Shown one piece after another: positions 8,055-12,604 of a stretch of DNA of 64,000 nucleotides (position 1 is the first letter of the stretch; every line of letters starts with the position of its first letter). The stretch lies in NCBI GenBank assembly GCA_001179505.1, contig CDMY01000562.1, positions 62,001-126,000 on the forward strand, written 5' to 3'. Made by a program: the position numbers and the translations under genes. The notes beneath the pieces were generated by a model. That model ran no database searches. It was not told the origin of the DNA and saw only the letters and a program-made list of their open reading frames with translations. The DNA comes from Vitrella brassicaformis CCMP3155 (taxonomy: Eukaryota; Protista; Chromerida).

Positions 8055-11000
8055 TCATGTAGCCGACTCCATGTCTGTGTGTGTGAGCGTATGGGTGTTG
8101 TTGACCTGCAGGTGCGATTTGAGGTCGTCCAGTGAGGTGAACTGATGCTTCTCGCCAGCCGCGGGGCGGTACCTGACACCCCAGACAAACACACACACAC
8201 ACACACTCTGTCTGTCTGTCTGTCTGTGGTGCTCTCTCACAGCATGAAAGTGTTGTCCGATGCGTCATCCTCCAGTACGAAGAAGAGCGTGTGTGTGTGC
8301 TGCTTCGACAGCTGCGAGTAGGCGTCCAGCAGGCCGTTCTGGCGGCTCTCAGCCGACGGCTTCAGCACCACCGCCTCCTAAACACAGCACATCCACACAC
8401 GGTGAGGTACGTGCTGAGCTGAGCTGTGCTGTGGTATGCTGTGGTGACTGACTGACCTTGTTGAGCTTCTGGACGATTTCCTCGGTGAATGACTCGTTGG
8501 CGGCCATGCAGTAGTGGTATGAGGCCTGGAGGAGCCTGACGACCTCCGAGTAGGCGTACCACTCGGGCACGTTCTCGCCCGCGTTGATGCGCCGACGGAA
8601 CTCGGTGCCTGAGATGTTCATCGTCTTCAACCTGCAAACACGCAGACACACGACACACAGAGGGAGAGGGAGGGGGAGAGGAAAATGGTGCAGGTGTGCT
8701 GTGCGGTGTGGTGTGGTTGGGGGAGGGTGGGAGGGGGGGATGGGGGGAATCAGACGCACCCCTGTTCCTTTGCGGCCTCCTTTGTAACGTATCTGTCTTC
8801 GTCTGGGTAGTAGACCATCGCCTTGAAGGGGATCGTCTTGATGCCTGATCCATCCATCCATCCACCAACCACACACACACACACACACACGTCGTGTCAC
8901 ACGCCTCCCTCCTGCTCAGTCCCCGAGAGTGAGTGAATCTGCCGCCGCCGCACCGATTTCGTCTTCATATTTGGCGGCGAGCTCCTGCGCGTCGTAGGGG
9001 CCGTAGAAGTCATTACCGGCCTTGTCCTTGCAGCCAGCGTGGTCCCTGCCGACGATCATCTGGGTGAACCCGTAGTTCTTGCGGGCGATCATGTGCTGGA
9101 TCGTCTCACGCGGACCACCTGCAGGGCAGGCAGGGCGGGCAACACATCACACCACATCCAGCCACACCACACCACACCAGATGTGCACGATGCATGGATG
9201 GATGTGTGTGGGTGTGAGTACCGACCGAGTCTCATGTGGTAGGGGAAGTACTCGATGAAGATCTTCTGCTTGGACAGCACCGGCTGCAGGGCCTCGTATG
9301 TCGGCACTGCACACACAAGTCGGTATGACAGACAGATGGGTGGACGTCTGTGTGGGTGTCTGTTTGTCTTTGTTTGTGCGTGTGATTATCTCCACATACC
9401 CCTGATAGCGGCCTCAAAATCGTCATCCTTCGACGGCCCAATCGCTGCCACACATAACACACACACACACAGAGAGAGGCATGTCCACATCCGGTCAGGC
9501 AGATCGAAGCATGTGTCACCCTCCCTCCCTCCCCCCCTCCCTCTCTCCCTCGCTCCAGGGTTGCATGCTTACTAGGGTGGACGACGACCGGTATCTCACC
9601 GTCCCCGGCCACCTCGGTGAACATGGCCACGTGAGCACGGTGCAGCGGATTGCGGCACTGAAACACCACTACCTCCTTCTCACCATCAAACTTGGCTCGC
9701 AATCCTATGCACAACACACACCAGCAGTGAGTGCAATCCAAGGCACAGCACACACATTGTCCTCCCTCCCTGTCCTTGTATCTCTCTGTGGTGGTGATGT
9801 GATGTGATGTGATGTGATTTGATGTGTTTGGTGCGGCTGTGTGTTACGTACGTTTGGGTGTGAAGACTTTCTCGGGCGGCAGGAAGGCCCGCTGCGGCAG
9901 CTGGATGCCCCTGACGTTGCCGCCGACGTAGGTATGGCCCATGGCGCTGTAGAGGTAGCTCACGAAGGGGTGCTCGTCACTGTCAGTGCCATACACTGAT
10001 TCAGACACACACACACAGACAGACAGACAGACAGACACGATTGGTGCGGTGTGGTGGTGTGGTGGATCGCTCATTGACCTTCTTTGGCCTCCTTCTGTTT
10101 GTCGGGTTTGTAGACGGACGTGACGTCGAGGATGGCCAGGGGGCCGCCGTGAGCTGACGAGTGCAGCAGCACCTCGTCGCCAACCTGAACGAACGGTTGA
10201 TAGAGAAAGAAGTCACACAGAACACAGACGACACAACGAGGAAGGGGATGGATGGAGTGATCATGCGTGTCACTCGGCGGATGGTCCTTGCTTGCCTTGA
10301 TGCTGTCATCGCTGACGTCAAGGACCACAGGCAGCCCCCACACAGCACCTACACACAACAAAACCCAATAGAGCTCTCTCTCTCTCTCTCTGTGTGTGTG
10401 TGTGTGTGTGCCAAGGTGTTCGCACCTTCGGGCAGTCTCATTTCCTCCAGACAGTGTGTGTACTCGTCGAGGGTCATGAAGCCCGTCAGCGGGGTATGCG
10501 CCCCGTTCATGAGCATCTCGAGGTCGCACACCTGCCGCTCCGTCAGCTCGGTCGTCCGCGACACGCGCGACACGTCCGGCACCGACTGGCCGTCCTTGGG
10601 CAGCAAATCAACCTGATACACACACATTGATGAATCGTATGAGGTTGGGAGCGTTTCTGTCGTACGAGGGCCTGGCCGCCGTGTGGCGCTTTCTTGGAGT
10701 TGGAGACCCGAGTGTGGATGCCGCACTCGGTGGCGACACGCTTGACGAACCGACCGTCGCGCTCTGACCACACACGCACAGAGGGATAGATGGGCTGCAC
10801 AGAGGGACCCCCCCTCCGCACACACACACACCCACCTGAGTTGTTGATGGGGACGGGCACCGACGTGTGGAAATCGCCGAAGGACTTCCACACATACCTG
10901 CACCCACCGTTAGGCCATGGCAGCACAGCACATGGGGCACACACAGTGTGGTGTAGTGTCAATCAATGTGTGTGCCGAGCCTAGCTCCTAGCTGGACTGG

Positions 11001-12604
11001 GGTGGCTTATTCACTCACCCACTTACCACTTGCTGCCGGTGTTGCCGAGCATCTTGTGCAGCGCGTCCTTGGAGTAGTAGAAGTACGGCCGGTCCAGAGT
11101 CATCTCAAGAAAACCCTACACGCACACACACACACACACACAGAGAGAGAGAGAGAGAGAAAGAAACCGGTCTCCCTGACACACATCTATCGCGTGTATC
11201 TGAAGCACCCACCCCAGCCGCCCACCCCGCCCACCCCGCCCACACACGCTGCGCACCTTGTAGGTGTCCCGTTCCTTGGCGGCCACCTCCCTGTCAGCGA
11301 GGTACAGCCGCTTGTGCAAAGGGTTGACGGGGATGTCGAACACCCGCGCGTACTCGACTACATCCTACAACGAATGGGACACAACACCTCTCTCTCTCTG
11401 TCTGTCTGTCTGTCTGTCCCCCTCTCCCTCTGTGTGCGGGCCTGGCTGCATAGGCACGTGTGCGTGTCGTACCTACCTCCCAGGACCACTCTACGAGGGG
11501 GTTGAATGTGTTCTTTTCGGCCTCCCAGATGGGCACGGCCGTCCGCGCGTTGCCCTGGTCGTTCCGCCGGCCCGTGATGACCACCGCGCCATCCAGACTC
11601 ATCAGCGCCTTCTGCAGGGGCTCCACCTTGCTCTTGAGGTCAAAATCGTCGTCCTTCATCGTCAAAAACGAACCTGACTCGCACACACAACACACAAGAC
11701 AAGCACCGACACACATCTCATCTCCACCTTGGAACTAGACGGATGGATGGATGGATGGATAGCCACACACACGCACAACCACAGGCACAGGCACAGGCCG
11801 TCAGGTCAGTACCTACCGTATTTCTGCTGGAAGTCCTCCCTGGTCTCGCAGTCGATGGGCTTGTACCACTTGATCTCAATAGGATACCTTCACACAACAC
11901 CACATCACACAAACAGGGGGGATGCACCTCTTTCCTTTGCCACCCTGCCCGCCTGCCTGCCTCCCTGCCCCTCCCTCTGCTTGGTTCGCCACTCACCCAC
12001 CTGTTCTGCATCTCAGCGGCCACTTGTCTCGTCTCGTCAAAAATGTGGAGGGTGTCCACGGCAATCAGAGAGAACGGGCCGTCCACATACCTGCACACAC
12101 CCACACACACACGCAGCAGATACCCATGCATGCAATGAGCAGATGCATGCATCACCCACCGCCCGCCGACCTGTGGAAGAGGTCCGCAATGACGTTGTCA
12201 GTAATGAGCCACGCCGTGATGAGCACCCCCGGCTGCCCCTTGAGCGCCTCCGCCACATCCTCCTGGAACTTGCGCACCTTGTCAGCCAAAAAGTGGCCCT
12301 CCGGCAGCTGCGCCGGTGGCGATTGGGCCGCCCCGCCCAACCCCTCACCGTACTCCTTGCCCCACTCGGTGCGCGTCGGCGGCAGACTGGTGCTGCTGGT
12401 GCTGAACCATCTCGCGCGTGACGATGGGATCCCTGTGGGCAGCATGGCGCTCCGTCTGCTGCTGCTCCTGGTGGTGGTGCTGGTGTTGCCGGCATAGTGA
12501 GATCTGGCAGGGCTGCAGGGGATGACGCAGGGTTGGCCTGCGTGGGAGTGGAAGGCGCGCGCGCCGCTGGCCGCCAAAGAGGCGCGTCGTGTGAGGGGCA
12601 ACAT
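8055..12604 (-). CDS. Fusion protein: N-terminal organellar leader + APS/PAPS reductase (CysH family, FeS-less type) + ATP sulfurylase (sulfate adenylyltransferase) + short C-terminal extension; about 20 exons
   Basis: Reductase motifs: [30 protein letters not shown]...W, ERDGRF...TECGIH. ATP sulfurylase motifs: [58 protein letters not shown]...PEWY. ECGIH and PHGG lie in one exon (~10665-10765), separated by TRVSNSKKA. Confidence 0.92.

Follow-up and report, generated by a model that had tools for sequence, protein, structure and literature searches.

Does the locus between positions 8055 and 12604 of the window (the whole 64,000-nucleotide stretch of Vitrella brassicaformis CCMP3155 DNA that was analysed) encode one polypeptide that joins a sulfonucleotide reductase to an ATP sulfurylase (ATPS), and, if so, which substrate does the reductase half use? 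A fusion of this kind is a textbook-style example of a single protein uniting two successive reactions that are thermodynamically coupled.

A single, expressed fusion gene

The gene model rebuilt from the sequence is on the minus strand and has 20 exons and a 2577-nt coding sequence (CDS), encoding 858 amino acids followed by TGA. It runs from an ATG at 12604 to a stop at 8055, which is exactly the span given in the initial annotation. The features of the model and the evidence for each are as follows.

8055..12604, minus strand: whole coding span of the fused APR(B-type)-ATPS (gene model, spliced contigs, 99.6% identity to P0073)
12171..12604, minus strand: exon 1, leader and start of the reductase domain, with the P-loop (10 letters) (gene model; joint 12088/12169)
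12001..12090, minus strand: exon 2, with a 10-letter motif (joints 12088/12169 and 11885/11999)
11817..11887, minus strand: exon 3 (gene model; joints 11885/11999 and 11671/11815)
11477..11673, minus strand: exon 4, PAPS_reduct core, with a 14-letter segment (Pfam PF01507, E = 5e-9; PDB matches; contig pieces)
11257..11364, minus strand: exon 5, last part of the conserved core (VNPLHK) and beginning of an insert of ~50 amino acids that is characteristic of the fused subfamily (model; contig record lengths)
11027..11115, minus strand: exon 6, the ~50-amino-acid insert, structured in the AF2 model (joint 10894/11024)
10836..10897, minus strand: exon 7, a 12-letter segment with GDxxxT/S replacing the Fe-S motif GCxPCT (model and contigs)
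10666..10763, minus strand: exon 8, the junction exon, ERDGRF...ATECGIH, 9-residue linker, PHGGQAL (joints 10763/10836 and 10610/10664)
10426..10612, minus strand: exon 9, N-terminal PUA-like domain of ATPS (Pfam PF14306, E = 8e-13; contigs)
10296..10348, minus strand: exon 10 (gene model; joint 10183/10295)
10295-10185, minus strand: GC-AG intron after exon 10 (joint 10183/10295 skips 111 in X1, X2, and X7)
10079..10184, minus strand: exon 11 (gene model, Pfam, contigs)
9852..9995, minus strand: exon 12 (gene model, Pfam, contigs)
9573..9704, minus strand: exon 13, ATPS active-site motif (11 letters) (Pfam PF01747; contigs; yeast alignment)
9400..9444, minus strand: exon 14, with an 11-letter segment (gene model; joint 9306/9400)
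9226..9306, minus strand: exon 15 (gene model and contigs)
8954..9118, minus strand: exon 16, ATPS motifs GPRE...VGRDHAG (Pfam PF01747, E = 2.5e-19; contigs)
8760..8844, minus strand: exon 17 (gene model and contigs)
8457..8631, minus strand: exon 18, last part of ATPS (ISGTEFRRR), then the first part of the C-terminal tail (model, Pfam, contigs)
8241..8377, minus strand: exon 19, tail (gene model and contigs)
8055..8172, minus strand: exon 20, end of the tail and stop, one of two candidate 3' structures (gene model)
8057-8055, minus strand: stop codon TGA of the rebuilt model (gene model)

In contigs from three RNA-like runs (X1, X2, and X7), every intron is missing. Record 16 of X7 (2953 nt, intron-free) spans positions 12607 to 8239 with 2464 nt, equal to the summed length of exons 1 to 19 plus a few flanking bases that have no exact alignment placement. 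Twelve of the 19 splice joints are explicitly listed from the RNA-like contigs, and these include both joints that flank exon 8 (10763/10836 and 10610/10664), the point at which the initial annotation had asked for transcript evidence. Splice joints of this gene were also looked for in the DNA run X3, and none was found there. A stop-free reading frame, the intron-free contig from 12607 to 8239, and the lack of these joints in the DNA run place a sulfonucleotide reductase and an ATP sulfurylase on one mRNA and in one polypeptide, as had been proposed.

The junction itself lies within exon 8 (10763-10666) in a single frame. This exon encodes a 29-letter stretch in which TECGIH (10731-10714) and PHGG (10686-10675) are separated by nine residues without a stop, and the codon of the catalytic Cys364 is at 10725-10723. 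Both motifs are within one exon, and the earlier assertion that the fusion does not arise from intron calls at this point is borne out. Across an alignment of 101 fused sequences, the junction consists of ECGIHTR, 8 or 9 residues, and PHGG; TR is present in 101/101 sequences, PHGG in 99-101/101, and the catalytic Cys of ECGIH in 100/101. The window carries the nine-residue chromerid variant.

Prokaryote-style gene callers split related loci into separate "PAPS reductase" and "ATPS" genes, which is what would be expected if the fusion were a gene-model artefact produced by two adjacent genes or a read-through transcript. However, the first open reading frame (ORF) of these split loci reads across ECGIHTR...PHGG and is not terminated until it meets an intron. 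Because the two motifs share one exon and one frame within the window, because spliced contigs from three RNA-like runs (with the X7 record spanning 12607-8239) cross the locus while the joints are missing from the DNA run, and because the junction is conserved, we rule out an intron-calling artefact or a pair of neighbouring genes and regard its probability as negligible. We conclude that the Vitrella brassicaformis fused gene is real and expressed.

The rebuilt protein is 99.6% identical to the deposited V. brassicaformis CCMP3155 protein P0073, whose UniRef name is "sulfate adenylyltransferase." The NCBI model starts at Met54 of the rebuilt protein, so that the window yields a transcript-supported gene model with 53 additional amino acids at the N terminus. 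The codon at 12604 is probably the first AUG, since transcript contigs reach 12607 and no upstream ATG is present in the ~176 nt of 5' untranslated region (UTR), which were read by eye. An extra coding exon upstream was considered and rejected: the contig break at 12607 recurs in a DNA contig, and the break is therefore due to repeat masking by the alignment tool and not to a splice. At the other end, the NCBI model has an alternative 3' structure, in which a splice from 8106 to 8010 leads to a protein ending in ...SHLQTQQP with a stop at 7998-7996.

The two catalytic halves and the reductase substrate

Pfam assigns PAPS_reduct to exon 4, with PUA_2 and ATP-sulfurylase following in exons 9 to 18; PAPS_reduct is N-terminal to the other two in one ORF, which is the domain order of APR-ATPS. 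These domains are also detected in P0073 and its relatives. The ATPS domain aligns to yeast Met3 (1R6X) with 309 bits and with every motif aligned. The yeast/fungal-type motifs QxRNPxHxxH, HPxxGxxKxxD, GPRE, GRDHAG, and SGTExRRR are all present and are invariant columns in the alignment of relatives. The APS-kinase-like C-terminal domain of Met3 was not found, as the PDB alignment ends where the catalytic domain ends. A look-up of exon 9 in the ESM Atlas gave no usable match.

The reductase half is of the Fe-S-less class, for which the criteria (FxxxxK and GDxxxS) are those of Patron 2008. It contains FDLKSK and GDFHTS, which fit Y/FxxxxK plus GDxxxT/S instead of CCxxRK plus GCxPCT, and TECGIH corresponds to the catalytic ECG(L/I)H cysteine motif of Fe-S-less reductases. 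Just two cysteines, C188 and the catalytic C364, occur in the domain; the two Cys pairs that bind the [4Fe-4S] cluster in plant-type APR were not found in it. The initial annotation had called this half an APS reductase. A sulfonucleotide reductase it is, but not a classical Fe-S APS reductase; by its motifs, it is of the Fe-S-less PAPS reductase/APR-B type.

In comparisons of the whole reductase domain with the PDB, the yeast 2OQ2 and fungal 7RGE PAPS reductases score 107 and 101 bits, and APR-B scores 85 bits. Exon 4 alone also matches PDB PAPS reductases. The last part of exon 1 gave no match when compared with PDB sequences, and query residues 179-230, the insert, are without a match in the PDB reductases. 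Because the domain is of the Fe-S-less type and scores best overall against yeast PAPS reductase, its designation as an APS reductase that bypasses APS kinase is an inference and not an established fact. The P-loop points towards APS. This segment scores better against APR-B than against fungal PAPS reductase, and its best PDB match is 4BWV. Its Asp136, kept as Asp in 98/101 fused sequences, aligns with the Asp of APR-B (4BWV), while the fungal PAPS reductases have Gly. This Asp may act as a bar to the 3'-phosphate. Since it is common to the fusion and APR-B, APS is the likely substrate, which would allow channelling without APS kinase.

The N-terminal domain could instead be a true, Met16-like PAPS reductase, fused for co-regulation or complex assembly and not for APS channelling. 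In that case an APS kinase, as a separate enzyme, would be required between the two fused activities, which would no longer be successive steps. Like all PAPS reductases, the domain lacks Fe-S; its top whole-domain PDB matches are the PAPS reductases of yeast (2OQ2) and a fungus (7RGE); and its ATPS partner is fungal-type as well. However, specificity for APS does not require Fe-S, as APR-B demonstrates (Patron 2008), and it is with APR-B, not fungal PAPS reductase, that the P-loop agrees, both over the segment and at its conserved Asp. Moreover, the dinoflagellate fused reductase groups with the APR-B clade, and high APR activity is mentioned for Heterocapsa extracts (Patron 2008). A junction of 8-9 residues that is fixed over 101 sequences from three distant groups also fits direct coupling better. 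We therefore consider a PAPS-reducing domain unlikely.

Still less credible, to the point of being very improbable, is that one half is a non-catalytic regulatory or scaffold domain comparable to the APS-kinase-like domain of fungal ATP sulfurylase. Fungal-type ATPS does provide a precedent for a dead pathway enzyme serving as an allosteric domain, and the tail of the chromerid proteins has a predicted thioredoxin fold that lacks the catalytic cysteines. Against this, all catalytic motifs of both halves (ECGIH, GRR, KSFGD, QxRNPxHxxH, GPRE, GRDxAG, and SGTEFRRR) show little or no variation among 85-101 sequences.

N-terminal leader and C-terminal tail

Two regions lie outside the catalytic halves.

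12320..12604, minus strand: N-terminal leader, about 95 amino acids (composition; AF2 model of P0073; transcript contigs)
8055..8522 (introns included), minus strand: chromerid C-terminal thioredoxin-fold domain without CXXC, amino acids ~753-846 (AF2, Foldseek, VIA-align)

The leader is rich in R, S, T, and A and includes ...RARWF|STSS; it lacks a hydrophobic core, and neither D nor E occurs in it ahead of residue 80. The portion that P0073 retains is modelled by AF2 as disordered (pLDDT below 50). Every alveolate fusion copy has such an acid-free, mitochondrial-looking leader, without a signal peptide and ending in R-x-F|S-S. No N-terminal leader was found in the holozoan fusion copies, and these proteins are therefore presumably cytosolic. 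Judged by composition, the mitochondrial-type leaders of alveolate copies and their lack in holozoan copies are a small addition to what is known of this fusion.

The tail (94 amino acids) is predicted by AF2 with a pLDDT of 86.5 and a pTM of 0.78, and the model resembles thioredoxins (Foldseek TM of about 0.7; VIA-align Z of 10.7). Pfam searches of the tail and the small exons gave only sub-threshold noise. Among the fused relatives compared, the thioredoxin-fold tail occurs in only three chromerid-type sequences, and none of these three has a Cys in the active-site loop. The C-terminal redox-active CXXC domain that is a hallmark of plant-type APR is thus not what is found here, where the predicted thioredoxin fold follows ATPS and is Cys-less. 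As a structural prediction, this Cys-less tail of the chromerid copies is a second small addition to the known fusion. Tentatively, and with more doubt than confidence, we suggest that myzozoan algae may carry out the whole of sulfate activation and reduction in the mitochondrion and not in the plastid, and that chromerids may have added a redox-dead thioredoxin-fold domain for thioredoxin docking or oligomerisation, or as a relic of a reductase-thioredoxin protein.

Proposed mechanism and relation to known systems

The fusion is already known and is not a discovery here, since reports of it appeared in 2008 (dinoflagellates) and 2014 (Chromera), and the Vitrella protein itself had been deposited. 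Patron 2008 described a reductase-ATPS fusion in Heterocapsa triquetra, as the initial annotation had correctly stated. Prioretti 2014 reported the same fusion in Amphidinium, Chromera velia, and Capsaspora, printed the sequence of the Chromera ortholog (Table S1), and termed functional attribution for the fused family premature; channelling is a published hypothesis for this family. We consider it probable, with good but not full confidence, that the present gene is the Vitrella ortholog of the described bifunctional APR-ATPS and that APS is passed directly between its halves.

The protein consists of a targeting-type leader, an Fe-S-less reductase with Cys364, nine residues, a yeast/fungal-type ATPS, and a chromerid-only predicted thioredoxin-fold tail; the AF2 model of the fused protein is a monomer. 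The ATPS domain would convert sulfate and ATP to APS, and the reductase domain would take APS directly, with the sulfo group passing to Cys364 in the interdomain linker. Sulfite would then be freed by a separate thioredoxin or glutaredoxin, which would be needed because the built-in thioredoxin-like tail cannot donate electrons. With these steps coupled, the ATPS reaction would be drawn forward despite its unfavourable equilibrium. Judging from the leader, the site would be an organelle, most likely the mitochondrion.

The fusion is widespread and has a fixed junction: about 115/120 clusters listed (90% identity), from chromerids, dinoflagellates, and unicellular holozoans, have the three-domain layout, and the fusion is common among the last of these too. 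In an unrooted tree, the Vitrella and Chromera velia sequences are sisters (86 SH-aLRT) in a clan of chromerids (100 SH-aLRT), which, together with the linker, insert, and tail that the Vitrella protein shares with the printed Chromera sequence, identifies the two as orthologs. An origin of the fusion in the myzozoan ancestor, as first suggested, is compatible with this tree because both chromerids and dinoflagellates have it. A search of the word index with the reductase domain alone returned nine matches, none of them a named APR-B or fungal PAPS reductase, and so provided no usable outgroup. Rooting by the stand-alone PAPS reductase-like P0198 and P0199 was tried and rejected, as the outgroup branch has a length of about 3.5 changes per site, with no resolution at the base. 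With these two sequences included, chromerids group weakly (80) with holozoans; given the very long branch and poorly supported base, we draw no conclusion on donor or order of events. Supposedly unfused reductase relatives (P0010, P0196, P0197, and Symbiodiniaceae models) proved to be fused genes cut at introns or partial models.

The closest named system is the Chromera velia APR-ATPS (P0002), which agrees with the Vitrella protein in domain order, linker (10 letters followed by SNxKKAPHGG), the ~50-amino-acid insert before the 12-letter segment of exon 7, and the C-terminal tail, and whose leader is similar. The two proteins are 56% identical by BLASTP and 62% identical over the aligned columns of the tree. 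They differ in that Vitrella has the longer leader and a tail with no Cys near its C-terminal helix, and identity between the two tails is only about 26%. The dinoflagellate proteins (Heterocapsa, Amphidinium, Polarella, Alexandrium, Gambierdiscus, and Togula) share the fusion, junction, Fe-S-less reductase, insert, and acid-free leader ending in R-x-F|S-S. However, they are only about 41-44% identical to the Vitrella protein, their linker is one residue shorter, and they end about 9 amino acids past the ATPS domain with no thioredoxin-fold tail. The holozoan fusions (Capsaspora "ATP sulfurylase Ats1," Sphaeroforma, Creolimax, Corallochytrium, Syssomonas, and Pigoraptor), at 44-49% identity, have the same Pfam trio and junction but neither leader nor tail.

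More distant systems have the parts in other arrangements. The APS-specific APR-B of Physcomitrella patens (4BWV) likewise has an Fe-S-less PAPS_reduct fold, the ECGIH Cys, and the P-loop Asp, but it stands alone, lacks the 50-amino-acid insert, and scores 85 bits compared with 107 for yeast PAPS reductase. Yeast Met16 (2OQ2) and Met3 (1G8F and 1R6X) are the best solved-structure matches of the respective halves, with all catalytic motifs aligned. In yeast, however, these are separate proteins and PAPS is used via APS kinase; Met16 has Gly at the position of the P-loop Asp, and Met3 has an APS-kinase-like C-terminal domain where the Vitrella protein has a predicted thioredoxin fold. Plant-type APR and diatom APR-B-Trx also combine a sulfonucleotide reductase with a thioredoxin-fold domain in one chain, whereas in the Vitrella protein an ATPS separates the reductase, which has no Fe-S ligands, from the thioredoxin fold, which lacks CXXC.

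Gene structure and transcript support

From the window sequence and its six-frame ORFs, the minus strand carries a eukaryotic gene rich in introns. Exons were assembled on GT-AG borders with one GC-AG intron allowed, and the resulting 20-exon model has a CDS of 2577 nt (858 aa, no interruption) from an ATG at 12604 to a TGA at 8055, which are the very limits proposed in the initial annotation. Pfam places PAPS_reduct at exon 4 and PUA_2 and ATP-sulfurylase across exons 9 to 18. Two features of the model are as follows:

10763-10666, minus strand: exon 8, which reads through the reductase C-terminal and sulfurylase N-terminal motifs
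10185-10295, minus strand: intron 10, with the GC donor AAG|GCAAGC; a 111-nt skip in X1, X2, and X7

Exon 8 therefore holds both motifs in a single frame. Their spacing of 9 residues, with no stop between, is as described in the initial annotation. Eight public runs contain the stretch, and four were mapped onto 8000-12700 (the RNA-like runs X1, X2, and X7 and the DNA run X3). Contigs from X1, X2, and X7 omit exactly the modelled introns; 12 of the 19 splice joints are listed, including both that flank exon 8 and that of the GC-AG intron, and none of these joints is present in X3 across 8000-12700. A single spliced contig covers both halves: X7 record 16 (2953 nt) spans 12607 to 8239 with 2464 nt, the length of exons 1 to 19 plus a few flanking bases of ambiguous alignment, and its unlisted stretches match the summed intervening exons in length. 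We conclude that the fusion gene is real and expressed, that it was correctly read from the sequence, and that it is of a kind already known.

All contigs seem to stop at 12607. We rejected a true contig end in favor of repeat masking because the DNA contig stops at the same point. The introns and 5' UTR are rich in (CA)n and (GACA)n/(GACT)n microsatellites (8176-8233, 8840-8898, 9446-9557, 12608-12660, and others), and the masking of these in read mapping produces false contig "ends," such as that at 12607. The ~176 nt of 5' UTR, read by eye, contain no ATG, and the first AUG is therefore probably at 12604. About 0.7 kb upstream of the gene start lies a divergent, intron-containing neighbor with a ribosomal RNA adenine dimethylase (KsgA/Dim1-type) domain (13314-14015, plus strand; Pfam RrnaAD, E = 5e-7).

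Exon 4, used as the query in an exhaustive representative search, returned several long proteins; the best of these, used in turn in a word-index search, led to the deposited Vitrella copy, P0073 ("unnamed protein product," Vitrella brassicaformis CCMP3155; UniRef name "sulfate adenylyltransferase"). It is 99.6% identical to the 20-exon model over 792 aa. P0073 starts at Met54 of the model, the second Met, 53 aa past the first AUG within the transcript contigs (region 12445-12604, minus strand). It also has one extra 3' intron (8105-8011; region 7996-8172, minus strand) that changes the last residues, giving two candidate C-termini, ...SHLQTQQP in P0073 versus ...SHLQVNN...SAT in the 20-exon model.

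Substrate preference and proposed mechanism

By its sequence, the ATP sulfurylase (ATPS) half belongs to the yeast/fungal type, scoring 309 bits against Met3 versus ~95 bits against the plant and human type; every catalytic motif aligns with Met3 and is invariant in the fused family. Motif reading of the window protein found no Fe-S cysteine pairs in the reductase half. FDLKSK and GDFHTS stand at the positions of CCxxRK and GCxPCT of the Fe-S enzymes, a replacement that serves as the criterion for the Fe-S-less type (Patron 2008, PMC2275785). Only the fused subfamily has an insert of ~50 aa ahead of YVWKSFGD, for which structure prediction gives an ordered fold.

The best solved relatives of the reductase half are yeast Met16 PAPS reductase (107 bits) and a second fungal PAPR (101 bits), followed by the APS-specific moss APR-B (4BWV; 85 bits), and on this ranking the domain might be taken for a PAPS reductase. 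The P-loop, TAWLITDNV, has its best match in APR-B when that segment is considered alone; the P-loop Asp is conserved in 98 of 101 fused sequences, and the aligned position is Asp in APR-B and Gly in fungal PAPR. An acidic P-loop residue would disfavor the 3'-phosphate of PAPS. We take the Asp as no more than a lead toward APS preference, and we consider it probable that the reductase domain prefers APS and unlikely that it is a PAPS reductase.

The domain architecture, intact motifs, and single mRNA are direct observations. In the mechanism that we propose, the ATPS half would make APS and the adjoining reductase half would take it directly, a thiosulfonate forming on the putative catalytic Cys364 of ECGIH, on the short interdomain linker; free thioredoxin or glutaredoxin would then release sulfite. 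The APS-kinase bypass suggested in the initial annotation would be valid here only if the reductase domain truly prefers APS, and "bypassing APS kinase" is a property of every APS-dependent pathway.

N-terminal leader and C-terminal tail

The present analysis adds two modest leads, one at each end of the protein:

12320-12604, minus strand: leader, also in P0074 (a third chromerid-type sequence), P0093, P0108, P0126, P0163, P0159, and others
8055-8522, minus strand: C-terminal ~94-aa domain (P0073:700-793; P0002, from Chromera velia, 675-764; P0074:741-843)

A leader of 22 to 95 aa is present in all alveolate copies; it is rich in R, S, T, and A, lacks acidic residues and a hydrophobic signal-peptide core, and ends in a conserved R-x-F|S-S motif. 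Holozoan copies have no leader and begin directly with the domain. Judged by composition alone, the leader resembles a mitochondrial presequence more than the bipartite leader that directs proteins to the plastid in these algae.

The ~94-residue tail occurs only in the three chromerid-type sequences, while dinoflagellate and holozoan copies are without it. Its predicted structure (pLDDT 86.5, pTM 0.78) has the same secondary-structure elements as in the full-length model, with a Foldseek TM of about 0.7 to many thioredoxins and a VIA-align Z of 10.7 (rmsd 2.5 Å over 91 residues). A thioredoxin fold is thus predicted with high confidence. Pfam did not recognize the domain, and all three tails have no cysteine in the active-site loop and no CXXC.

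Distribution, ancestry, and known fusions

Among the matches listed in the word-index search, PF01507, PF14306, and PF01747 occur together in about 115 of 120 90%-identity clusters. Clusters with a named source come from dinoflagellates (Polarella, Gambierdiscus, Togula, Alexandrium), chromerids, and unicellular holozoans including Capsaspora and Sphaeroforma; EukProt record tags presumably denote the holozoans Creolimax, Corallochytrium, Abeoforma, Chromosphaera, Syssomonas, and Pigoraptor. Apparent stand-alone close relatives of the reductase were rejected as fused genes interrupted by an intron right after PHGG, the start of the ATPS half, or as partial Symbiodiniaceae models. Across 101 aligned fused proteins, ECGIH is kept in 98 to 100 and the subsequent TR in all 101, and PHGG follows after 8 residues (9 in the three chromerid-type sequences). 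This widespread three-domain layout and fixed junction argue that the fusion arose once. P0074 (L003; Logan SRR23076779 contig, 2817 nt, intron-free) is a more divergent APR-ATPS-Trx-like protein (49% identity) and suggests that public data contain another chromerid-like lineage. In a JGI metagenome protein, P0007 (1422 aa), a close reductase-domain relative is joined to POR_N, FAD_binding_1, and NAD_binding_1 in an arrangement that recalls the flavoprotein subunit of sulfite reductase; this protein, too, may unite consecutive steps of sulfate reduction.

An unrooted maximum-likelihood tree of 36 full-length fusions has three clans (chromerids, holozoans, and dinoflagellate-like sequences; 97 to 100 SH-aLRT each). 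A history of vertical inheritance within Myzozoa and a single transfer into or out of Holozoa is compatible with this tree, which, having only three clans and no root, cannot demonstrate it. A reductase-half tree rooted with two distant stand-alone proteins leaves the base unresolved. An origin ancestral to myzozoans is thus plausible but unproven.

The fusion itself is not new. The precedent named in the initial annotation is genuine: for Heterocapsa triquetra, Patron, Durnford, and Kopriva (2008, PMC2275785) described an ATPS-APR fusion and suggested that APS is channelled. Prioretti et al. (2014, PMC4220642) added Amphidinium klebsii, A. carterae, Chromera velia, and Capsaspora owczarzaki, listed the Heterocapsa protein as plastid-located, and emphasized the absence of kinetic data for the fusion, which a 2024 review still cites as known. 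Our literature search found no paper on the Vitrella copy itself. The Chromera velia APR-ATPS in Table S1 of Prioretti et al. is the same as P0002 from the internal Met of P0002 onward, excluding a few residues missing or garbled in the extracted text, and P0002 and the window protein share 56% identity.
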